Sequence record: NC_061451.1
DNA: 64,000 nt
Strand: one strand, 5' to 3'
Part shown: in pieces, positions 11,381 to 34,026 of the stretch
How the letters are laid out: the number at the start of each line of letters is the position of its first letter
How positions within the stretch are numbered: the stretch's first letter is position 1
The notes under the pieces: model-generated
Databases searched by the model: none
What the model saw: the letters and a program-made list of their open reading frames with translations, nothing else
What the model was told of the DNA's origin: nothing
Translations under genes and position numbers: made by a program

Positions 11381-12103
11381 ATGATTACAGCGAAACACAT
11401 TGAAAGCCGTTTAAGAACAATAGACTATACCAAGCCTAATCCTGATCGGGAAATGCTTGTGGCGCTTGTGTCTGATGGACGTTCTCGTATTTTGAAGACA
11501 GCACAGATCGATGGTCTGTGTCCGCTGTCTGATAAGTATTTTGAGTTCTGCCTCAGCCAGGTCGGCTCTTTCTGCACGGCAGGTTACAACGCTGTGGAGA
11601 TTGCAATGTCTATCGGTGTTCAGCCTATCTATGTCGCAGCGCATATCCATCTGCATGGCTGCGATTGGGCACACAGACTTTTAGGCTTGAAGCGATTTGC
11701 TGCGCTTGCCCGTGGTCCACATACTGTGTGGTCATCAGGTGAAGCGTGGTTCGCTTTGGGTGAATGCCAGCGTCGCTCTAAGCTGCACTATGGCACTTCA
11801 AGCGGGCAGGAAGCACTGCGCAAAGCAATCCAAAAAGCAGAGATGCCTTATGTGCTTGCTGCCGCTGTCACACATCCCCATCGTCTCATGAGCATTCTCC
11901 GTCCGCGTGATGGTCTGTTGTATCGTGACCCACGTATCGAGAAGACGCTGAAACAACGTGAGAAAGCCGCTGCTGATGCAAAGGCGGAAGGCCGTTCTGT
12001 GCTAACGACTGAGAAGCGTAGCGAGTACGGCGACATGGGCAAGTTGTTTAACGGTCATCTGTCTCGTGCTGACAAGACAGGTAACCCTCGCGTAACTGAA
12101 TAA
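11381..12103 (+). CDS. hypothetical protein
   Basis: 240 aa ORF. Confidence 0.7.
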   Translation: MITAKHIESRLRTIDYTKPNPDREMLVALVSDGRSRILKTAQIDGLCPLSDKYFEFCLSQVGSFCTAGYNAVEIAMSIGVQPIYVAAHIHLHGCDWAHRLLGLKRFAALARGPHTVWSSGEAWFALGECQRRSKLHYGTSSGQEALRKAIQKAEMPYVLAAAVTHPHRLMSILRPRDGLLYRDPRIEKTLKQREKAAADAKAEGRSVLTTEKRSEYGDMGKLFNGHLSRADKTGNPRVTE

Positions 12104-12114
12104 GGAAACTTATC

Positions 12115-12495
12115 GTGGACAAGAATGAAATCACGCTGTTGATTGATAGCCTGAACGGAAATCGCAATTTCCCAATCGATCCGGAAGCTGCAATAGGCAT
12201 GACCCTTGAACAGTTCATCAAAACCAATGGGAACTTTGTGTTTCTCATGAATGATGCGCTCGTCCGTGACATGGTAAGCAAGCAGCATGAGTACGATCCA
12301 AACTTCGTACCGGCTACTACTCTCGACGAGATCAACAACGGTCTTATGGGAACTTTCCACGGTGTCAATGTGTACAGCACTTGGGTGTATCGTGCTCCTG
12401 GTGATCTGCCTGCGGACGCGAAGCCTCGTTTCGGTATGTATCGCGCCGACCTAAAACAAATCTTCCCGTTGACTAAACATTTTATCGTAAAGTAA
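12115..12495 (+). CDS. hypothetical protein, possible capsid-like fragment
   Basis: AAGGA RBS, GTG start; FVPATTLDEINNGLMGTFHGVNVYS. Confidence 0.6.
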   Translation: MDKNEITLLIDSLNGNRNFPIDPEAAIGMTLEQFIKTNGNFVFLMNDALVRDMVSKQHEYDPNFVPATTLDEINNGLMGTFHGVNVYSTWVYRAPGDLPADAKPRFGMYRADLKQIFPLTKHFIVK

Positions 12496-12546
12496 AACTG
12501 TTTACGGTAATTTCTGAAGGTCAATCAGAATAACGGAATCCTCATC

Positions 12547-13317
12547 ATGAGCAATATCGATACCACAATGCCTGAAGGCAAATGGGAGTTCAACGAGTCG
12601 GTTGCTTGCGTGTTTGATAACATGCTGCAAAACTCCATCCCATCTTATGGCCGTATGCGTGACCTGACGTACCGTCTGGGTCGTCGCTTCGTAACTCCCG
12701 GTTCAGCTATCGTTGATCTCGGTGCTTCACTCGGCCGAGCTATCGAGCCGTTTGCAAAAGAGTTCGGCAAGTATGACTATCATCATGCTGCGGACGCGCC
12801 GGGCGAAGACTACGAAACAGGCAATCACTATAGCCTGTATGAAGTAGCTCCTGCTATGCGCGAACGTCTGGTGCAGAATGAAGTGCTCAACTCAGTGAAT
12901 GCCAAACTGGAAAGTGAATCGCTGGTAGATACTGACACGTTTATGTTCGACGGTCAGGTGCATTGCTCGTTGATTCTGAGTGTGCTAACTCTCCAGTTCA
13001 CGCCGATTGAACATCGTCAACACATTCTGGAGAACGTGTACAACTCGCTGCAACCAGGCGGCGCATTCATCCTCGTTGAGAAGGTGTTAGGTGATAACAA
13101 CTATCTCGACAAAATGCTGGTGGACACCTACTACCAGATGAAGGGCGGTAACGGTTACAGCGCCGAGTCGATTGCGACTAAACGTAAGTCACTGGAAGGC
13201 GTACTCGTTCCTGTTAAAGCAGCATGGAACGAAGAACTGTTGCGTAAAGCAGGCTTCGGTCAGGTAGAAAGTTTCTATCGTGACCTGAACTTCGCAGGAT
13301 GGATTGCTATTAAGTAA
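12547..13317 (+). CDS. cmoA: CmoA-like carboxy-S-adenosylmethionine synthase
   Basis: WEFNESVACVFDNMLQNSIPSY, VDLGASLG, TLQF, PGGAFILVEK, NGYS...KRKSL (Arg199 equivalent at 13183-13185), AGF...F..LNF, collinear with E. coli CmoA as recalled. Confidence 0.9.
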   Translation: MSNIDTTMPEGKWEFNESVACVFDNMLQNSIPSYGRMRDLTYRLGRRFVTPGSAIVDLGASLGRAIEPFAKEFGKYDYHHAADAPGEDYETGNHYSLYEVAPAMRERLVQNEVLNSVNAKLESESLVDTDTFMFDGQVHCSLILSVLTLQFTPIEHRQHILENVYNSLQPGGAFILVEKVLGDNNYLDKMLVDTYYQMKGGNGYSAESIATKRKSLEGVLVPVKAAWNEELLRKAGFGQVESFYRDLNFAGWIAIK

Positions 13318-13326
13318 GGAAATACT

Positions 13327-14589
13327 ATGAAATTAAACGGGCGTATCTTAGCTATCGTCCCACACAAGACAATGCAAGACCGTACCAAGTCGGGTGTGGG
13401 TTCGTACATTGATGGGCTAGAGGCATACGGCTTCTGCGACTTTATCACAGACGGAGAGAACAGCTCCGTTACGAAAAGTCAGTGGTTCACTTATGGTGAC
13501 ACTACTCTCAGTGACGGTTATAAGATAGGGCATATCCAGAGCGAGTTGCTGATTGCACTTGAGCGCCTCCCATACCGTGCGATTATTTGCAGCACGTATG
13601 AGGCGATTGAAGCCTGTGTGTCTCTGGGACTGCCAAAGATTATGCCCGTTTACTATCGCACGCACAACAGCTTTTTGCTCACACAAGATCTCAAGGGTCT
13701 TGGTGCAGAGAAGATCCATCGTGCGTTGTTGCAAGCACGCGTCACAGGGCTGCGCATACTTGCTAACTGTGATTCGACTGCGATCAATCTTACTGAGCGC
13801 TATAAGACGCCAGCACACGTTGCCTACAACTCGTTCTCGGTGCCTGACTACAACCCACCAGCTCGGCGTTCTCCGCAACTGTTGATTATCTGTCGCTATG
13901 AGAAGGTCAAGCGCACGTTGTTTGCTGCGCGTATTGCTGCTGCATCAGGACTACCCGTTCGTGTTATGACAGGCAGTGATCGTCAAGCACGCAATTGGGA
14001 GAAAGAGCTGGCTGAGGCGGGCGTCAAAGAGTATACGGTCGTCAGTGGCCTTAGCGGCAAACAGAAACTCGAATTTATAGGCGCTTGCACCGTAGCCCTT
14101 TCTACTGCGAGCGTTGAATCATTTGCTAATGGTGTGCGTGAGTCTATCCCCTACTGTCCTACCTTTATCGTGCAAACATCCAAGTACGATTGGGCTAAGG
14201 ACTATACGCGCTTCTGTACCGCCGACAAGCATGTTCATATCAGAACTGTTGATCGCGTATCGGACCAAGCCGTAGCTGAAATCGGAAGTGAGATAGCGCA
14301 AACAGCTACCACTCGTTATCTGACAGGACCTCAGCGTAAGCAGCTACTGACTGCTTGGGCAAAGCAAGTTGATCGTGGTTGGTCCGACTTTGTTCAGAAG
14401 GCTGTTGTTGACGATGACGGCAAGCCGCTGCGCACCGAGCTGTATCAAGAACTGATCGACAAGTCAGAGATCGATTGGTCACAGACGCCCACGCTGATGC
14501 GTACTGTAAATGCGTTACATAAATGCCACGCTCGTTTGGGCCTGACATTTGATGGCACTAAAATCAAATATAAGAGGAAGCGCAAATGA
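13327..14589 (+). CDS. GT-B (GT4-like) glycosyltransferase
   Basis: SGVGSY N-terminal loop, CRYEKVKR, E-x7-E motif ESFANGVRE. Confidence 0.75.
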   Translation: MKLNGRILAIVPHKTMQDRTKSGVGSYIDGLEAYGFCDFITDGENSSVTKSQWFTYGDTTLSDGYKIGHIQSELLIALERLPYRAIICSTYEAIEACVSLGLPKIMPVYYRTHNSFLLTQDLKGLGAEKIHRALLQARVTGLRILANCDSTAINLTERYKTPAHVAYNSFSVPDYNPPARRSPQLLIICRYEKVKRTLFAARIAAASGLPVRVMTGSDRQARNWEKELAEAGVKEYTVVSGLSGKQKLEFIGACTVALSTASVESFANGVRESIPYCPTFIVQTSKYDWAKDYTRFCTADKHVHIRTVDRVSDQAVAEIGSEIAQTATTRYLTGPQRKQLLTAWAKQVDRGWSDFVQKAVVDDDGKPLRTELYQELIDKSEIDWSQTPTLMRTVNALHKCHARLGLTFDGTKIKYKRKRK

Positions 14590-15662
14590 GTGTTATCGGT
14601 GATATTTATAACATCCCACAACCGTTCGCAATGTATGTCGGGAATTGTGAGACGCGTGCTCAAGCCAAAGTTGCTGCTGGCACAATCGAGTGGGCGCCAG
14701 AGAAAGTGTGCTGCACCGTAGATGATGGTAACAACCTGTTCCCTAACGTACCTTCAATCAACCCTGCTGACGTGCATAAGACAGATGCAGAAACTTTAGT
14801 GATTGGCTGTGCACCTTTCGGCGGCCGCATTGACGAGCACATGGACAAAGCTATTCGTAGCGCTATCTATCGTGGCCGCAACATCGCTGCTGCTATGCAT
14901 ACGCGCCTGGCGGATAATCCTGAATACGTTGAGCTGGCTGATCGCTACAACGTCAAGCTGTATGACTTCCGCCATCGTCCTGATGCGTACCCACTCGGTA
15001 CTGGTGAGAAGCGTAGCGGTCTGCGTCTGTTAACTGTCGGTACTGATAGCTCATGCGGTAAGAAGTTTACCACGCTGTCTCTGTATCGTGAACTCAAAGC
15101 TATTCATGAAGCCACTACGTTCTGCTCTACTGGCCAGACGGGTTTCTTGATTAGCGGTTGCGGTATCAACAACGACACGATTGTTGCCGACTTCCTTGCT
15201 GGTGCCGCTGAATCACTTTCGCCTGATGGTCCTGCTGATCATGTTTATCTGATTGAGGGTCAAGGCGCTATCACGCACCCAGCATACACAGGCGGCAGTA
15301 TGAGTCTGATTGCTGGCTCGCAGCCTGATCATCTCATCCTGTGTCACGCATGGAACCGTCAGAATCAGTTGGGCGTTAAGCGTAAGCCTGACCTTGATTT
15401 CGAGATGCGTGCTAACATTGAAGCGGCACGTATTCACGGTCTCAACCCGACTTACATCGGTATCAGCATTAACTTCTCTGAGTGCGACCTCACCGCCGAT
15501 GAGCAAGATAAAATCCTGTACCAACTCGCATCAACGTATGAGATTCCCGTGTTCGACCCATCACAGGACACTTCTGTGTTGCGCGATCTCGCTCGTATGT
15601 TAGCAACTAAAGCCAAAGCAAGGAGCCTCGATGGCCAAGCATCAACTGCGCAAGCTGTTTGA
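14586..15662 (+). CDS. DUF1611 family protein (DgcN-like)
   Basis: LVIGCAPFGG, LLTVGTDSSCGKKFT, STGQTG, IEGQGAITHPAY, GSQPDHLILCH. Confidence 0.88.
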   Translation: MSVIGDIYNIPQPFAMYVGNCETRAQAKVAAGTIEWAPEKVCCTVDDGNNLFPNVPSINPADVHKTDAETLVIGCAPFGGRIDEHMDKAIRSAIYRGRNIAAAMHTRLADNPEYVELADRYNVKLYDFRHRPDAYPLGTGEKRSGLRLLTVGTDSSCGKKFTTLSLYRELKAIHEATTFCSTGQTGFLISGCGINNDTIVADFLAGAAESLSPDGPADHVYLIEGQGAITHPAYTGGSMSLIAGSQPDHLILCHAWNRQNQLGVKRKPDLDFEMRANIEAARIHGLNPTYIGISINFSECDLTADEQDKILYQLASTYEIPVFDPSQDTSVLRDLARMLATKAKARSLDGQASTAQAV

Positions 15663-16506
15663 ACAGCATGTGAAAAAAGAAGTGAAAGCAGACAAGGTAG
15701 CTGTGCTGCTTTCATCTGGCCTCGATGGTTTGGTCAGTGCGTTAGCTGCACACGACCTGGGCAAGAAGGTACATGCCTTCACATTCCAAATGGGTGACAA
15801 CCCTAGCTTTGACAGTCGCCACGCACAGGTCGTTGCACAGAAGATGGGATGGGAGTTCACTCTCGTTAAAGTTCCCACCAGCGTGTCTGCTATCGCGTTA
15901 GCGTGGCGCGTGCTACACTCCAAGTATCGCTGCATCAAGAAGCGTGACTATGAATGTGCGTACCCTATGGTCTATTGCTACAAGGCAATCAAAGACGCTG
16001 GGTATAAGTATGTGTTAAGCGGGCTGGTGGCCGATGGCTACTTCCTGTATAACCGTAACACGCACATTCAGAAAATCAGCGGCCCGCACTCTGACGCTCA
16101 GAAGTATCATGAGTTCCGTACTCAATACTTTAGTCCGTGGCTTAAACACGGTAAGAAGTCTCTGGGCGTTGACGGGTACAACCCGAGCGGTATGTTGCAG
16201 CATGAAATGTTGTGCGATAACTTCGGCCTGATTCACGTTAACCCGTGGATGCAGAACAAGGTGTTTGACTACTTCATCAAATACACTTGGCAGGAGCTGA
16301 ATCAGCCTAAGCAGAAGATGCCACTAACCGAAGCGTGGGCAGAACACATTGCTCTTGTTGGTCATCGCCCACACAGGGGCTATCAGACAGAAGCCAAAGT
16401 GCCTGAATACTTTGAGCATCTGATCGATAACCCTGAGATTAACTTTAACGGGCGCAAGCGCATCATGGACGTGGCACGCGACTGGTCCAAACGAGAGCCT
16501 GAATAA
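15631..16506 (+). CDS. AsnB-synthetase-domain ATP-dependent amide ligase lacking a glutaminase domain (CmoY-like)
   Basis: PP-loop LLSSGLDG, VLSGLVADGYF (AsnB VLSGEGADE), P..K..L; only 291 aa. Confidence 0.75.
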   Translation: MAKHQLRKLFEQHVKKEVKADKVAVLLSSGLDGLVSALAAHDLGKKVHAFTFQMGDNPSFDSRHAQVVAQKMGWEFTLVKVPTSVSAIALAWRVLHSKYRCIKKRDYECAYPMVYCYKAIKDAGYKYVLSGLVADGYFLYNRNTHIQKISGPHSDAQKYHEFRTQYFSPWLKHGKKSLGVDGYNPSGMLQHEMLCDNFGLIHVNPWMQNKVFDYFIKYTWQELNQPKQKMPLTEAWAEHIALVGHRPHRGYQTEAKVPEYFEHLIDNPEINFNGRKRIMDVARDWSKREPE

Positions 16507-16761
16507 ATGCATCCTGTTATCACAGACTTTCTTGGTCCTATCGTTAAGCGGCTGGGCTTATTCACTGCTATATTCGGTTTTGTCGGCGTGCTGCTGTCTG
16601 TGATCGCAGTGCTTGTGTGCCGCCCAGAAGTCCTTCAATACGAATACGATACTGTAAATAGACTTCGTACTGAGGGTATTGTATTCTTGGGTAAAGGCGT
16701 TCTTGTTTACATCGTAGGCGAGATACTTGAAGGCACGTTCAAGTGGAGAAAAGATGATTAA
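16507..16761 (+). CDS. small membrane protein
   Basis: Two hydrophobic segments. Confidence 0.6.
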   Translation: MHPVITDFLGPIVKRLGLFTAIFGFVGVLLSVIAVLVCRPEVLQYEYDTVNRLRTEGIVFLGKGVLVYIVGEILEGTFKWRKDD

Positions 16762-17017
16762 CAAATTCGTGATGAAGAAGACTCCATCCATTGAAGCCTG
16801 TCAGTGGAACGGAGAGAACAAGGAAGAGATTGAAGCCTTCCTTGGCAATAACGGATTCGTTGTTGGGCGTTACGTGCAGATTGGTGTTCTGGATAAATAT
16901 CAGAAGCCAACCATTGCTAACGTAAGCGTGGGCAACTATGTGATCAAGCGTGATGATGGTAAGTTCTATGCCATTACTGCGCAAGATCTGTTTGAGAATT
17001 ATGTATTAGCAGATTGA
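16754..17017 (+). CDS. conserved phage hypothetical protein
   Basis: IEACQWNGEN...VGNYVIKRDDGKFY...F...Y pattern typical of a common small phage family. Confidence 0.7.
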   Translation: MINKFVMKKTPSIEACQWNGENKEEIEAFLGNNGFVVGRYVQIGVLDKYQKPTIANVSVGNYVIKRDDGKFYAITAQDLFENYVLAD

Positions 17018-19133: not shown

Positions 19134-19535
19134 ATGAGACCTGAAAACATTTCACGCACCTATCGCGTCGGTCAGTCTGACCTGGAGAAAGCACACAACG
19201 TCTGCGGAGAGAACAATGTAACACTCTCAGATGTGGTACGCAGATACATCGAAAGAATCGTACTGACTGAGGGTGAGTTCCTTATGAGCGAGCGTAAGCA
19301 CGTACCTGAGTCTCAACTGAATGTACGCCTGCCCTTTTACATTGCGCACTCCTTTGCATCTGTGTGTAAGTCTCGTGGTACGTTAGCCTCTAAAACCATT
19401 CTCAACTTTGTCAGGAATATTGCTCTTTCAGGTACTATCCCTGAGGAGTTAAAGTACGCCTCAGACACAGAGTTGCGTGCCTATATTACCTCCGAGCGCT
19501 CTCGCCTCGATGCACTGGAAGCAAAACTTAAATGA
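19134..19535 (+). CDS. tandem ribbon-helix-helix DNA-binding protein
   Basis: RTYRV...TLSDVVRRYIE and QLNVRLP...ASKTILNFVR. Confidence 0.6.
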   Translation: MRPENISRTYRVGQSDLEKAHNVCGENNVTLSDVVRRYIERIVLTEGEFLMSERKHVPESQLNVRLPFYIAHSFASVCKSRGTLASKTILNFVRNIALSGTIPEELKYASDTELRAYITSERSRLDALEAKLK

Positions 19536-20371
19536 TTCTAACTAGCCCCATTCGCTATCAGGGCAACAAGCGCACTCTGATGCCTCTTATTCTTGAACAT
19601 GCGCCTGTGAAGGATTGCGTTCGCATGATAGACGCATTCGGCGGTAGCGGTACTGTTGCGCTCAACATGCCTCACAAGTTTCGCATCTACAATGAATTGA
19701 GCACGCCTGTGTTTGAGATCGTCCAGTTGCTTGCGCATCAAGATCCGAAGAAAACGTTGGGTCAGATCAAGCGTATCGTCAAGCGTTTTTGTCTAACCAA
19801 TAGCAGCCAAGACAACTACGACATGTTCCGCGCGTATGTGCAGAAGAAGCCTAGCCCTCTTCACCATTACATCGCACACAGGCATGCACGCTCTAACATG
19901 CTGCGCTTCAACCAGAAAGGCATCTACAACGTGCCGTTCGGCGAGCGGGGCCTGATTGGCAAGTTCGATCAGCTCGAACAGGAGCTGGTGCAGTTCCACG
20001 AGCGTATGCAGAACACGCACATCACCAACATGCGCTACAACATGTTGCTCAAGTCTGTGTCAAAGCATATCGGACCTAACACGTTCATTTACTTTGACCC
20101 TCCGTATCTTGCTAGCGGTGCGATGCAATACGGTAAGTGGACTGAGCACAACGAACGCAACCTGCTGTCCGTACTTGAGTATCTGAATCGTCAAGGCTGC
20201 CCGTGGATGTTGAGCAACGTTCTCCAACATCGGCATCACACGAACGACCTGCTCAAACGCTGGCTAAAGAAACACGCAACGACTGTCATCTATCCTGACA
20301 AGTCTTATTCAATGGCCAACTCTCATTCCGATAGTCACAGCACTATCGAGATCCTGGCAATGAACTACTGA
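19532..20371 (+). CDS. dam: DNA adenine methyltransferase (Dam/D12 class)
   Basis: SPIRYQGNK, DAFGGSG, YFDPPY, WMLSN. Confidence 0.92.
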   Translation: MILTSPIRYQGNKRTLMPLILEHAPVKDCVRMIDAFGGSGTVALNMPHKFRIYNELSTPVFEIVQLLAHQDPKKTLGQIKRIVKRFCLTNSSQDNYDMFRAYVQKKPSPLHHYIAHRHARSNMLRFNQKGIYNVPFGERGLIGKFDQLEQELVQFHERMQNTHITNMRYNMLLKSVSKHIGPNTFIYFDPPYLASGAMQYGKWTEHNERNLLSVLEYLNRQGCPWMLSNVLQHRHHTNDLLKRWLKKHATTVIYPDKSYSMANSHSDSHSTIEILAMNY

Positions 20372-23284: not shown

Positions 23285-23669
23285 TCAGTTACGTGATCAA
23301 TTGACCGAAGCTGAATACGCAGAACTTGAGCGCACTACAGCGCGGTCGATCATGGAACAAGTGTGGGCACTACGCGGCTGGACGGTAAAGCTCGACTGGT
23401 GCAACTATATGTGCGACGACGTTGATTGGTTATTCCATGGTAATGAGCGTAAAGCACCAGTTGATCACGCTATGCCGAATTCTGGTGTTGGCACTAGCAT
23501 TGAGCAGCATCGCCTTAATGTCGTGTTTACTCCTACTGAGGTTAGCGTTACGAACTCACTGGTAGACAGCCCTGTCACGGGCACTGGTATGTCACTGCGC
23601 TGTGCTTACTGCGCGTGGCTTTTAGAAATCGAAAAACAAAAGGCTGCCAATGCGCTGCAATCTGACTGA
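23271..23669 (+). CDS. hypothetical protein (NinX/DUF2591-like?)
   Basis: P....GTSIEQHRLNV...G.SLR.A pattern. Confidence 0.55.
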   Translation: MSSVNQLRDQLTEAEYAELERTTARSIMEQVWALRGWTVKLDWCNYMCDDVDWLFHGNERKAPVDHAMPNSGVGTSIEQHRLNVVFTPTEVSVTNSLVDSPVTGTGMSLRCAYCAWLLEIEKQKAANALQSD

Positions 23670-24165
23670 ACTGCCTATCAAACTCGATCAGGCTGAAAAC
23701 ATTATGGGCAGCGTGTTCGCGCTTGCTGCTGGCTCCAAGTCCAAACGCCGTGCTACTGCGGCAATGCTCATTCACTTCCATGAAGGCTACCCTACCATTA
23801 TCAGTAGTGGCGTCAATGGTACTGTGCCCGGTGAGAGCAACGTGTGTGAGAATGAAGACCTCACTCTGACGTTTGCGCACGTCACCCACGCAGAAGCTAA
23901 CTGCCTCAATCGCATGGACGAATACAGTCTGTGGCCAGAAGAAGAGGACATCCTGTTTTGTACTGACAGCCCATGTCCTGATTGTTTGCAGCAACTCGAA
24001 TCTGCTGGTGTGCAGACCATCATTTATGCGCGTGAATACAGACTCACAGAGCACCTGGATAAGTCTGCTATTCGCATGTATTGTCTCGATATTGAGAACG
24101 TGCGGGCGTCTTTGCTGAAATCTGTAAATCGTATAGACGAAGTGATTGCAACCATACCTACTTAA
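23650..24165 (+). CDS. dCMP deaminase
   Basis: SGVNG.PG, HAEAN, SPCPDC Zn motifs. Confidence 0.9.
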   Translation: MRCNLTELPIKLDQAENIMGSVFALAAGSKSKRRATAAMLIHFHEGYPTIISSGVNGTVPGESNVCENEDLTLTFAHVTHAEANCLNRMDEYSLWPEEEDILFCTDSPCPDCLQQLESAGVQTIIYAREYRLTEHLDKSAIRMYCLDIENVRASLLKSVNRIDEVIATIPT

Positions 24166-31190: not shown

Positions 31191-31889
31191 ATGGCAAAAA
31201 TTGCTAAAGCAAAGGAAGGGAAAAAGAAAAGCAACCCTATGTTGATTGACCTGAAAAAGTTCAAGTCAGTTAAACAGCTTAAGGGTGCGAAGTACAACCC
31301 TCGTTTCATTACAGACAGCCGACTGAGAGCGCTCGAAGGTTCTTTGGGCAGCTTCGGTGATTTGTCTGGCGTGGTGTTCAACAACAGCGTAGACAGTGGC
31401 GTATTGATCTCAGGCCACCAGCGTCTCAAGTCGATTGAGAAGTGGGACTCGCGCATTGAGATTCAACAAACGTCTGACAAGTACGGCACGGTAGCGTTGG
31501 GTTATATCCATGCTACCAGCGCCAAAGGTAAAACGATCAGCATCCCACTGCGTATCGTTAACTGGTCAGATAAGAAAGTGGAGTTTGCTGCTAACATTGC
31601 TGCGAATGCCCACGGCGGTGAGTTCGATAACAAAAAGCTCGCGTCTCTTGTTGAGAAGCTGGACCTGACTACAATCAAGCCAGCTCTTATCGGGCTTGAC
31701 CCGTTAGAGATTCGCGGCCTGCAACAGACGCTGAGCAAACAAGCTATCGTCGAGCAGGAAAAGCGTGTTGGTAAAACAACAGGCAAAATGAACGGCAGTA
31801 CTGGCGAGTTCAAAGAGTACACGACTGATGAAGTTGGTACTGCGCTGACCTGCACCTGCCCACGTTGTGGCTTTAAGTTCGAGGGATAA
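31191..31889 (+). CDS. ParB/Srx-like domain protein with C-terminal Zn ribbon
   Basis: KYNPR, SFGDLSGVVFN, LISGHQRLK; CTCPRCGFKF. Confidence 0.8.
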   Translation: MAKIAKAKEGKKKSNPMLIDLKKFKSVKQLKGAKYNPRFITDSRLRALEGSLGSFGDLSGVVFNNSVDSGVLISGHQRLKSIEKWDSRIEIQQTSDKYGTVALGYIHATSAKGKTISIPLRIVNWSDKKVEFAANIAANAHGGEFDNKKLASLVEKLDLTTIKPALIGLDPLEIRGLQQTLSKQAIVEQEKRVGKTTGKMNGSTGEFKEYTTDEVGTALTCTCPRCGFKFEG

Positions 31890-31890
31890 C

Positions 31891-34026
31891 ATGATCATCA
31901 AGCCGCCTACAATGAAAGAGATTAATAAGCTGCCCAAGCCTTGGTCAGGTATGAGTTTCTTTGCAGGTTGCGGTGGTTCATCTACCGGTCACAAGATGGC
32001 CGGTATTAACATCCTACTGAGCAACGAGTTCGTGGACGCGGCTCGTGAATCGTATGAAGCGAACCATCCAACAACCAAAGTGTTGCCCCACGATATTCGT
32101 CGTCTTGACCCGAAAAAGCTGCTTAGCTATTGCGGCCTGAGTCAGGGCGAACTGGACTTGCTCGACGGCAGTCCTCCGTGCTTCACCGAAGACACGTTCA
32201 TTCATACCGACACTGGTATGAAGTTCATCACTGATATGCGCATCGGTGACTTCGCTATGACCTCTGTTGGTAAGTATCATCCAGTGTATGACACGATGGT
32301 ACGTCCGTATGACGGTCAGATGCACAGAATTGAAACGCTGCTTGGTCAGAACAATGCAACGCCTGAACATCCGTTCTTTGTTCGTCGTCAGAATGAAGAA
32401 ACTGGCGGGTACAGTGAGCCGTTCTGGTGTGACGCTAAAGATGTGCAGGAAGGTGACCTGTTAGGTACGCCTCGTGTTACGCCTGATATGGGCGAAGCAC
32501 ACACGCATGAGATTATCTCGTCGTTGACTGCGCAGCTTGTGCGTTGGATTGCATTGCCTGAGTTCTGGTGGCTGATTGGTCACTGGTGCAATCGCGGTGC
32601 AATCGATAAGATTCGTGGTGTCGATGTTATTCAATTCACCTCGATGACAGCGATGGAAAACTCGCTGGTGGAACAAGCGTTCGACGTGCTCAAGTTAAGC
32701 AGCATCAACAGCGCTTCGTCCGACATGGGCGTTCATCGTAAGACCGTTCGTGTTGTTATGGACACAGACCTGTTGCTGTTCTTGCGTATGTTTATCGCGC
32801 AGGGCAAGAAGTCTATGTCCCGCCGTCTGCCTGGCATGATCTTCCATCTGGCTAAAGAGCTGAAACAGCAATTCATTCTCGGCTATCTGGGTCGTGATTA
32901 CGTCACAGCAATGGGCGTTGGTCATGCGTTAGAGGCTGACTCAAAGCGCTTCCTAGTTGAGATGAATTACCTGTGCTGCTCTGCGTTCAACAGACCGCTG
33001 TTCGATGCAATGTTGTTCACTGACTTGCATTACGGTAGTCCGATGTTACCACCGAGTCGCTTCATTACCAAAGAGCACATCGGCTTCCTGTTCTTGCAAG
33101 AAGAGGTTAATTTCTTCTTTGAGTTCGAGCCGGAAGACCCGCATCTGTGGGTTGAAGTGATTGAGAACTTTACGCATCATGAAACGTGCAACGTCTATAA
33201 CTTCTCAGTCAGTGTTGATGAGACGTATGTTGCTAACGGCATGGTCGTGCATAACTGCAAAGGGTTCTCGACTGCTGGCGTGAAAGAAGACGGCTGGGGC
33301 AAAGAGGTTAAGTACAGCGGCAACAAGTATCAGCAAGTCGATGACCTGTTCGATCAGTATTGCCGTATGCTCAAGCACATGCAGCCTAAAACGTTCACTG
33401 CGGAAAACGTTAGTGGCCTCGTTAAAGGTGCGTCGAAGGGTTACTTCATTGAAATCATGAAGACCTTTGATCAGCTGGGCTACTATGTGCGAGCGCCGTT
33501 GCTTAATGCTGCGTGGCTTGGTGTGCCTCAGTCTCGTGAGCGTATCATCTTTATGGGTGTGCGCAAAGACGTGGCGAAAGCACTCGGCTATAAAACTGCG
33601 TTGACTGCTGTGCCTGATGTAACACCTCAATCAAGCATGGCGTTCCTTGCAGATGCATTGCCGAACATTCGTCGCTATAAAGGTACGGAGCGTGACATTA
33701 TCAAGTATCTGCCTGCTGTTAACGGCCCGATGCCTACGATTACCGCTGCTGATGCTATCGCATACGAAACAGCACGCTTCTCCTCTGCTGGCTTCATTGA
33801 AGACGACAAAGGGCACAGACGCAAGCTGACGATTGACGAACTCAAAGTTGTGTCAGGCATGCCTAGTGATTACGTGCTCACAGGTAAGTTTGAAGAACAA
33901 TGGGAACGTCTCGGTCGTGTGTGCGTACCTGCAATGACGTGTGCTGCGGCAAGCGCGTTGATACGCCATGTGCTTGAGCCTTACGCGAAGCTGCGTAAAA
34001 AGAAACCTGGGGATCGTTTTCGTTAA
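31891..34026 (+). CDS. DNA cytosine-C5 transferase (Dcm fold), predicted carboxymethyltransferase (CmoX-like), intein-containing
   Basis: Motif I FFAGCGG, IV GSPP|CKGFS, VI ENVSGL, VIII PQSRERI; motif X reads LGRVCVP instead of GN(S/A)V. Confidence 0.88.
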   Translation: MIIKPPTMKEINKLPKPWSGMSFFAGCGGSSTGHKMAGINILLSNEFVDAARESYEANHPTTKVLPHDIRRLDPKKLLSYCGLSQGELDLLDGSPPCFTEDTFIHTDTGMKFITDMRIGDFAMTSVGKYHPVYDTMVRPYDGQMHRIETLLGQNNATPEHPFFVRRQNEETGGYSEPFWCDAKDVQEGDLLGTPRVTPDMGEAHTHEIISSLTAQLVRWIALPEFWWLIGHWCNRGAIDKIRGVDVIQFTSMTAMENSLVEQAFDVLKLSSINSASSDMGVHRKTVRVVMDTDLLLFLRMFIAQGKKSMSRRLPGMIFHLAKELKQQFILGYLGRDYVTAMGVGHALEADSKRFLVEMNYLCCSAFNRPLFDAMLFTDLHYGSPMLPPSRFITKEHIGFLFLQEEVNFFFEFEPEDPHLWVEVIENFTHHETCNVYNFSVSVDETYVANGMVVHNCKGFSTAGVKEDGWGKEVKYSGNKYQQVDDLFDQYCRMLKHMQPKTFTAENVSGLVKGASKGYFIEIMKTFDQLGYYVRAPLLNAAWLGVPQSRERIIFMGVRKDVAKALGYKTALTAVPDVTPQSSMAFLADALPNIRRYKGTERDIIKYLPAVNGPMPTITAADAIAYETARFSSAGFIEDDKGHRRKLTIDELKVVSGMPSDYVLTGKFEEQWERLGRVCVPAMTCAAASALIRHVLEPYAKLRKKKPGDRFR
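32179..33255 (+). mobile_element. intein (359 aa) with degenerate LAGLIDADG endonuclease
   Basis: Starts CFTEDT, block B ATPEHPF, ends YVANGMVVHN; +1 residue is the catalytic Cys. Confidence 0.92.

Follow-up and report, generated by a model that had tools for sequence, protein, structure and literature searches.

A predicted CmoY-type amide ligase of an Erwinia jumbo phage, encoded next to a DUF1611/DgcN-like partner in a putative cytosine hypermodification module

Erwinia phage pEa_SNUABM_7 (NC_061451.1) is a jumbo phage of the genus Snuvirus with a genome of 265,635 bp. We analyzed a stretch of 64,000 nucleotides of this record (the window, whose coordinates are those of the record) and concentrated on gp020, a gene whose product is labeled 'hypothetical protein'. 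Over bases 12000–17000 the window matches the record with 100% identity. We consider it likely that gp020 is a CmoY-type, ATP-dependent and AMP-forming amide ligase that acts on phage DNA after replication, and that its amine is not glycine. The evidence computed here comprises homology, fold, conservation of catalytic motifs, gene context and co-occurrence. The DNA substrate and the adenylation chemistry are proposed by analogy with SpCmoY (A0A514ABJ0), the ligase of Synechococcus phage S-B43, and the amine is proposed from gene context only. The gene and its translation signal are located as follows.

15631–16506, plus strand: gp020, predicted CmoY-type AMP-forming amide ligase, 291 amino acids (aa), consisting of an AsnB-type synthetase domain only.
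15620–15625, plus strand: Shine-Dalgarno sequence AAGGAG, 5 nt before the gp020 ATG and within the 3' end of gp019.

The open reading frame (ORF) at 15631–16506 corresponds to the annotated coding sequence MPK74_gp020 and is open over 291 aa, while the opposite strand is dense in stop codons. It overlaps the gp019 ORF by 32 nt. Homologs of gp020 at 46–87% identity are found in at least nine phage or metagenome lineages, and gp020 is therefore more than a chance ORF; these homologs are 285–301 aa long and share the same start residue. We also considered gp020 as a fragment of a longer AsnB gene and ruled this out, as the upstream frame encodes a complete DUF1611 protein. Directly after the gp020 stop codon lies an ORF of 84 aa (16507–16761) with no family match, and an 87-aa ORF occupies the equivalent place in two of the related loci surveyed below (L008 and L009).

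At the level of protein families, gp020 matches the Pfam Asn_synthase domain (PF00733) over residues 5–138 with an E-value of 1.8e-13. Matches to models of characterized enzymes fall below their cut-offs: the asparagine synthase model TIGR01536 is matched at positions 234–394 of 517 only (58.4 bits, cut-off 267.1), NF006949 reaches 31.6 bits (cut-off 499), the QueC model TIGR00364 is matched by residues 25–83 only (23.6 bits, cut-off 150.3), PF06508 scores 21.8 bits against 22, and the Pfam NAD_synthase match is marginal, with 22.8 bits for the NadE model (cut-off 63.65). A phmmer search of gp020 against the sequences of the PDB gave nothing meaningful (best E-value 0.26). The fold is considerably more informative. 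An AlphaFold2 model built from 71 homologs has a predicted local distance difference test score (pLDDT) of 96.3 and a predicted template modeling score (pTM) of 0.92. Its best structural matches span the whole protein and are all synthetase domains of the AsnB family, namely human ASNS residues 228–526 (Z 22.6, root-mean-square deviation (rmsd) 2.9, 261 residues aligned to gp020 residues 1–291), β-lactam synthetase residues 220–486 (1mc1, Z 22.5), carbapenam synthetase residues 217–483 (CarA, 1q19, Z 21.7) and Escherichia coli AsnB residues 207–506 (Z 20.2). A second tier, composed of the QueC-like ArtA (Z 12.2), LarE, argininosuccinate synthetase and NadE, aligns over about 160 residues at Z of about 11–12.

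The start of gp020 corresponds to residue 207–209 of AsnB, and the model aligns with ASNS from residue 228 onwards; gp020 therefore begins where the N-terminal nucleophile (Ntn) glutaminase domain of AsnB ends. The corresponding glutaminase family, GATase_7 (PF13537), was not found in the whole pEa_SNUABM_7 genome, while control genomes gave matches; the upstream neighbor of gp020 is a DUF1611 protein and not a glutaminase, and a whole-genome search identified gp020 as the sole Asn_synthase domain in this phage. Residues 28–33 read SSGLDG and residues 130–136 read SGLVADG. A prior reading of the window, made from sequence only, had pointed to this pair of motifs in a 291-aa protein devoid of an N-terminal Ntn domain; the ORF, the motifs, the model alignment and the PF13537 search all agree, and the observation of a glutaminase-less synthetase-domain protein carrying both motifs is confirmed. 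Across the 71-sequence alignment S28, G30, D32, G131 and D135 are invariant. A profile alignment of gp020 to E. coli AsnB extends over only about 210 positions and its C-terminal half has low posterior probabilities; equivalents of AsnB catalytic residues were assigned only at the PP-loop and the SG..D motif.

The closest characterized relative of gp020 comes from a recently described pathway (Yang et al., Nat Commun 2025; PMC12783734). CmoA makes carboxy-S-adenosylmethionine (carboxy-SAM), which serves CmoX to carboxymethylate C5 of cytosine in DNA; CmoX is homologous to C5-methyltransferases and has an SPPC motif as well as an arginine (R350 of SpCmoX) that touches the carboxymethyl group. 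With ATP and glycine, CmoY then converts the resulting 5-carboxymethylcytosine (5cxmC) in DNA into its glycine amide, as demonstrated in E. coli, in vitro and in the native phage. SpCmoY, at 271 aa, consists of an ATP-binding domain only, and in S-B43 the cmoY gene lies at 147774–148589 between cmoA and cmoX (source data of PMC12783734). The same study reports 2251 AMP-forming ligases adjoining CmoX genes, which fall into several clusters with differing pocket residues and for which other amines are predicted; the residues that contact the glycine carboxylate are kept in the largest cluster and in several smaller ones.

A pairwise alignment of gp020 with SpCmoY is full-length (275 aa aligned, 33% identity, 53% positives, E-value 1e-50), and a tblastn search with gp020 matched the S-B43 gene at 147891–148559 (E-value 6e-33). 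We placed gp020 in a maximum-likelihood tree (IQ-TREE) of 46 proteins, comprising 17 gp020-clade sequences, 22 SpCmoY-clade sequences, a metagenome homolog with 35% identity (P0024), four other phage ligases (from Rivsvirus pEa_SNUABM_5, PaBG, Yersinia phage fHe-Yen9-02 and Staphylococcus phage vB-SscS-F1), and one E. coli AsnB synthetase domain, with one QueC sequence from E. coli serving as outgroup. The sequences of the gp020 clade form one monophyletic unit (support 100/99) on a long stem of 0.95, which joins the SpCmoY clade with a support of 92/84; the four other phage ligases make up a group of their own. Both AsnB and QueC of E. coli fall outside, on branches of 5.99 and 7.94 substitutions per site, respectively, and gp020 clusters with neither; branches of such length are placed with little certainty. 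In domain content, full-length homology, phylogeny, motifs and encoded partners alike, gp020 behaves as a CmoY-type ligase and not as AsnB or QueC. A bona fide AsnB is ruled out by the missing Ntn domain with its Cys1, by scores far under the cut-offs and by the tree, and QueC by the short, low-scoring match to residues 25–83 and by its very distant position in the tree. The proposal made from sequence only, that the protein is an amide ligase which adenylates the 5cxmC carboxylate and accepts an external amine, thus gains from the homology to SpCmoY, from the phylogenetic placement and from the presence of CmoA and CmoX homologs in the same phage, and on this analogy it is probably correct. 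The lack of a glutaminase domain does not set gp020 apart from CmoY, as SpCmoY shares it.

S28, G30, D32, D61, C101, K104, E108, G131, D135, R163, P205, H248, R275 and D284 are invariant across the two clades, and all obvious catalytic candidates that are invariant in the SpCmoY clade are retained in gp020. At more than 20 further positions, each clade has a conserved residue of its own. More specifically, the PP-loop reads S-S-G-L-D-G in the gp020 clade and S-G-G-V-D-S in the SpCmoY clade, with S29 and G33 being typical of the gp020 clade. The SG..ADG motif is followed by F-x-x-x-R-N instead of Y-G-x-S-K-K, and the surroundings of the invariant H248 and Q252 read R-P-H-R-G-Y-Q-T-E-A instead of K-D-H-I-N-L-Q-L-G-S. 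T99 and K60 of SpCmoY are replaced in gp020 by R105 and H64, respectively. The gp020 clade also carries an insertion of about 12 residues at approximately positions 169–183, and no other ligase group has such an insertion.

Homologs of the two enzymes acting upstream of CmoY are encoded in the window.

12547–13317, plus strand: gp017, predicted CmoA homolog (carboxy-SAM synthase), 256 aa.
31867–34026, plus strand: predicted CmoX homolog (DNA cytosine C5-carboxymethyltransferase), a precursor of 719 aa with exteins at residues 1–104 and 464–719.
32179–33255, plus strand: intein of about 359 aa (C105–N463) that interrupts the CmoX homolog within its SPPC motif, exactly at the catalytic cysteine.
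31191–31889, plus strand: ParB-like protein, 232 aa, directly upstream of the CmoX homolog.

The CmoA homolog lies 2.3 kb upstream of gp020. It is 28% identical to SpCmoA (E-value 3e-25), matches phrog_4752 with an E-value of 3e-78, and matches TIGR00740 with an E-value of 1.2e-39 at 136 bits, under the 193-bit cut-off of this model. A whole-genome search for the C5-methyltransferase family found one gene, with PF00145 matched in two pieces (E-value 6e-38). The N-terminal 105 residues of its product, the last of which read ...LDGSPPC, share 55% identity with SpCmoX, and residues 464–703 align with SpCmoX residues 98–369 at 31% identity; R684 aligns with R350 of SpCmoX and the GSPP|C motif is intact. 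The segment in between, with junctions GSPP-C...VVHN-CKGFS, is identified as an intein because it starts with Cys, ends in HN, is followed by Cys and has weak matches to Hint_2 (E-value 1.7e-4) and Intein_splicing (E-value 1.3e-7, below the cut-off). An identically split frame of 723–726 aa is present in three related complete genomes, those of pEa_SNUABM_33, Alexandra and pEa_SNUABM_3. The protein encoded directly upstream of the CmoX homolog had no match in a Pfam search. It is 43% identical to proteins upstream of CmoX in the loci L010 and L102, of which the L010 protein has a weak ParB_N match (E-value 0.005), and ParBc proteins adjoin many CmoX genes (PMC12783734).

To compare the gene neighborhoods of the two clades, we collected loci from isolate phages, IMG/VR and metagenome assemblies (designated by L numbers) and scanned them by tblastn. 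The gp020 clade is represented by 19 loci from about nine lineages at 46–100% identity, and the SpCmoY clade by 76 loci, 63 of which extend for more than 1.5 kb on the upstream side of the ligase. The accessory genes found in this survey are listed below, for pEa_SNUABM_7 and then for other gp020-clade loci.

14586–15662, plus strand: gp019, DUF1611/DgcN-like protein, 358 aa.
13327–14589, plus strand: gp018, divergent GT4-like (GT-B) glycosyltransferase-like protein, 420 aa.
L012:3824–4759 (pEa_SNUABM_3): alanine/serine-racemase-like (Alr-like) gene.
L006:7099–8001: Alr-like gene.
L010:7055–8032: Alr-like gene.
L103:2869–3780: Alr-like gene.
L104:1231–2181: Alr-like gene.

The most consistent partner of the gp020-type ligase is the DUF1611 protein. 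In pEa_SNUABM_7 this is gp019, which contains both DUF1611 domains (PF07755, E-value 2e-46; PF17396, E-value 5.5e-18) and a Walker-A-like GTDSSCGKK motif. It reaches 289.8 bits with the DgcN model NF041892, under the 480-bit equivalog cut-off, and aligns over 317 residues with PDB entry 7XRJ (E-value 4e-53). A GapMind preprint refers to 7XRJ as the structure of a D-glutamate acetyltransferase. In all 19 gp020-clade loci a DUF1611 gene precedes the ligase, either immediately or with one gene in between; none of the 76 SpCmoY-clade loci has one, nor do the Rivsvirus, PaBG, Yersinia-phage and Staphylococcus-phage loci. The overlap between the DUF1611 and ligase frames recurs in Dickeya phage AD1, where it measures 8 nt.

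Two further genes accompany this pair in part of the clade. A gene for an alanine-racemase-like protein of 300–325 aa sits between DUF1611 and the ligase in five of the nine lineages, wedged in such that stop and start codons overlap; the protein of pEa_SNUABM_3 keeps the VVKGNFYGHG motif with the lysine for pyridoxal phosphate and the tyrosine of the GY(Y/A)D motif. The GT4-like gene is optional, being present in 11 of the 19 loci and missing from Dickeya phage AD1, which has no racemase-like gene either; pEa_SNUABM_3 has both. Its representative gp018 had no match in Pfam, NCBIfam or the PDB sequences. By ESM Atlas language-model features it scores 0.98 against GT4 clusters of viruses and bacteria, and its homologs in L010 and L103 have weak matches to PF00534 (Glycos_transf_1). 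Pathway genes are adjacent to one another in L010, L102 and L103. The L010 operon comprises genes for the ParB-like protein, CmoX, CmoA, the GT-like protein, DUF1611, the Alr-like protein and the ligase, and the L102 operon those for the ParB-like protein, CmoX, DUF1611, the ligase and CmoA. These single-operon sets in metagenome contigs firmly tie the gp020-type ligase and DUF1611 to the 5cxmC pathway.

At the syntenic spot of Rivsvirus pEa_SNUABM_5 (L013:3044–4737), CmoA is followed by a ligase of another clade with 25% identity to gp020 and there is no DUF1611 gene; the hypermodification module appears to have been swapped as a cassette among syntenic Erwinia jumbo phage genera. PaBG, Yersinia phage fHe-Yen9-02 and a Staphylococcus phage also have a ligase of the pEa_SNUABM_5 type. 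The survey yielded some additional neighbors. In one metagenome lineage, which has the GT4-like gene and no racemase-like gene, the gp020-clade ligase is followed one or two genes further on by a gene for a 302-aa GNAT acetyltransferase (L008:9192–10100 and L009:9526–10434). On two SpCmoY-clade contigs (L015:3728–5032 and L016:3895–5004), an unannotated gene for 369–434 aa with no Pfam match overlaps the ligase start. In pEa_SNUABM_7 itself, a Dam-family adenine methyltransferase (TIGR00571, E-value 9e-33) and an annotated deoxycytidylate deaminase are encoded a few kb downstream of gp020 at 19532–20371 and 23650–24165, respectively, and the DNA of this phage probably carries N6-methyladenine as well.

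On this basis, we propose the following series of reactions. Phage CmoA would make carboxy-SAM, from which spliced CmoX would move the carboxymethyl group to C5 of cytosine in DNA. The ligase gp020 would hold ATP through its PP-loop (S28, G30 and D32) and D135 of the SG..AD motif and adenylate 5cxmC at its carboxylate, with double-stranded phage DNA as the substrate. An external amine would then attack the acyl-adenylate, giving a 5-(amido)carboxymethylcytosine. Since there is no glutaminase domain to supply ammonia, the amine would be drawn from the cell pool.

The sequence-only reading had further suggested that this amine may differ from glycine. That part remains reasonable and is now accompanied by evidence from gene context, from which the amine itself is proposed. 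The strict pairing with DUF1611, the Alr-like gene and the clade-specific changes next to invariant residues together make it likely that the gp020-clade ligase uses another amine. This amine is probably not glycine, and may be a small amino acid of D configuration, for example D-Ala or D-Glu from the host pool. A small D-amino acid is the most economical candidate because a racemase-like gene belongs to the module in five of nine lineages and because the protein always encoded with the ligase is similar to a D-amino-acid N-acyltransferase. In the tree, ligases from phages with a racemase are intermingled with those from phages without one, at identities of up to 83%, which argues for the same amine whether or not the phage has a racemase; racemase-free phages, pEa_SNUABM_7 included, could obtain D-Ala or D-Glu from the pool of host cell-wall precursors. 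Formally, a product of the CmoY type (cytosin-5-yl-acetyl-NH-CHR-COOH) belongs to the N-(substituted acetyl)-amino acids, the class of compounds that DgcN makes. We give a low probability to the more specific scheme in which the ligase and its DgcN-like partner together attach a D-amino acid, supplied by the racemase-like enzyme or by the host peptidoglycan-precursor pool, and in which phages with the GT4-like gene add a sugar cap.

Several observations weigh against a CmoY-type ligase with an amine other than glycine. The identity between gp020 and SpCmoY is just 33%, and the CmoX homolog is encoded 15 kb from the ligase and would require protein splicing for activity. A search across the pEa_SNUABM_7 genome for a racemase like that of pEa_SNUABM_3 found none. 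The basic residues that are invariant in the SpCmoY clade and could be checked (K103, K104, R163, K229, R275 and R277) are kept in gp020, and an α-amino acid, glycine included, would be compatible with this enzyme. DgcN acetylates an α-amine, and an amino acid joined through its α-amine has none left, such that a simple sequential decoration fails to explain DUF1611; were DUF1611 to acetylate another amine of the attached group, a diamino substrate would be needed. Finally, no biochemical or mass-spectrometric data were found in the literature on DNA modification in pEa_SNUABM_7, Snuvirus, Alexandravirus or AD1.

One alternative is that gp020 ligates glycine to 5cxmC as in S-B43, with the DUF1611, GT4-like and racemase-like proteins performing unrelated or later steps. 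Homology to SpCmoY, the retention of all residues that are invariant in the joint alignment together with the basic ones, the position of the gp020 clade as sister to, or nested among, SpCmoY-clade sequences, and the conservation of the glycine-carboxylate residues in the largest and several smaller ligase clusters (PMC12783734) would all be expected if glycine were the amine. We nevertheless regard it as unlikely, as the long stem, the insertion and the rewritten motif near H248 and Q252 set the gp020 clade apart, and as an association with DUF1611 of 19/19 against 0/76 is hard to square with an identical product. The racemase-like gene between DUF1611 and the ligase, with its overlapping stop and start codons, is equally hard to square with it. 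A further alternative is a hand-off, whereby gp020 would only or mainly adenylate 5cxmC, and gp019 would bind a D-amino acid and catalyze its N-acylation by the activated cytosin-5-yl-acetyl group. This scheme is chemically coherent and consistent with the strict co-occurrence of ligase clade and DUF1611, with the frame overlaps in pEa_SNUABM_7 and AD1, with the racemase-like gene in five of nine lineages and with the homology of gp019 to a structurally characterized D-glutamate N-acetyltransferase; its product would, by chemical analogy, be of the same class as N-acetyl-D-glutamate, the product of DgcN. Yet SpCmoY performs both half-reactions alone (PMC12783734), gp020 keeps all residues invariant in the family, the donor of DgcN is acetyl-CoA and not an adenylate (as judged from the NCBIfam name), and gp019 scores under the DgcN equivalog cut-off (290 versus 480 bits). 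We regard a hand-off as unlikely.

We also weighed whether gp020 might not act on DNA at all, being instead an ammonia-dependent asparagine synthetase-like enzyme, a QueC-like enzyme or one that amidates a free metabolite, a nucleotide or tRNA cmo5U. The weak matches to AsnB, QueC and NadE models would fit such an activity, and phage CmoA could in principle feed the host CmoB. The same matches are, however, far from their thresholds (58 versus 267 bits for TIGR01536, 23.6 versus 150 for QueC and 22.8 versus 63.65 for NadE), and in the tree AsnB and QueC are each set apart by a very long branch. Furthermore, no CmoB-like gene (PF08003) is present in the whole pEa_SNUABM_7 genome, genes of the gp020 clade share operons with CmoX, a DNA cytosine methyltransferase homolog, and the nearest characterized homolog works on DNA (PMC12783734). 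An activity away from DNA is accordingly very improbable, and a CmoY-type ligase acting on phage DNA with an amine other than glycine remains our preferred explanation.

The CmoA/CmoX/CmoY pathway was published in December 2025 with a single characterized ligase, for which the amine is glycine, and a CmoY relative using another amine is already anticipated in that work (PMC12783734). Its main text makes no mention of DUF1611 or of Erwinia. What is added here is therefore the strict pairing of one ligase clade with a DgcN-like protein, together with accessory genes of the racemase-like and GT4-like kinds and the finding of the system in jumbo phages of Erwinia and Dickeya that are in culture. 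Taken alone, the ligase is an ordinary member of a known family, and it is the module that points to an undescribed hypermodified cytosine. As such, gp020 provides a cultured and sequenced example of a ligase cluster expected to use another amine. Erwinia and Dickeya jumbo phages are in use for the biocontrol of fire blight and soft rot. The genomic signature described here, an obligatory DUF1611/DgcN-like gene with optional racemase-like and GT-like genes, shows where to seek new hypermodified cytosines. The identity of the base, once known, would widen the chemistry by which phages camouflage their DNA, provide a first non-catabolic role for DUF1611 and offer a new amide ligase for enzymatic DNA labeling. 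If true, the D-amino-acid proposal would mean a DNA base carrying a D-amino acid, attached by a pair of ligase and N-acyltransferase that is undescribed in nucleic-acid modification.

With QueC, NadE, LarE and argininosuccinate synthetase, gp020 shares a PP-loop Rossmann-like core (Z of about 11–12 over about 160 residues), but just the N-terminal half aligns with QueC and these other PP-loop ATP pyrophosphatases. Its modeled fold is that of the C-terminal synthetase domain of AsnB and ASNS (Z 20.2–22.6, about 260 residues, rmsd 2.9), with which it would share PP-loop ATP pyrophosphatase chemistry through an acyl-adenylate. Unlike these enzymes, gp020 has neither an Ntn glutaminase domain nor an ammonia tunnel partner, the Glu of the AsnB motif SGEGSDE is replaced by Leu in SGLVADG, and the presumed acyl substrate is a modified DNA base rather than aspartate. 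β-lactam and carbapenam synthetases (Z 22.5 and 21.7) likewise adenylate a carboxylate and form a C–N bond without glutamine hydrolysis, as predicted for gp020; they retain a vestigial N-terminal domain and cyclize an intramolecular amine of a small molecule, whereas gp020 lacks that domain and presumably couples two separate substrates. For the partner gp019, and not for gp020, the nearest known relative is DgcN (7XRJ), as reflected in the 317 aligned residues (E-value 4e-53) and both DUF1611 domains; gp019 differs in scoring below the equivalog cut-off and in its genomic setting, a phage operon for DNA modification and not a cluster for D-glutamate catabolism. The closest system to gp020 overall is SpCmoY, likewise a single AsnB-type synthetase domain without glutaminase (271 versus 291 aa) with a PP-loop and an SG..ADG motif, encoded together with CmoA and CmoX. 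Compared to SpCmoY, gp020 falls into another clade with a long stem branch, its PP-loop reads SSGLDG instead of SGGVDS and it carries the insertion at about 169–183; in pEa_SNUABM_7 the CmoX gene is 15 kb away and intein-bearing. The gp020 clade is always accompanied by DUF1611 and often by Alr-like and GT4-like genes, none of which occurs in the SpCmoY-clade loci.

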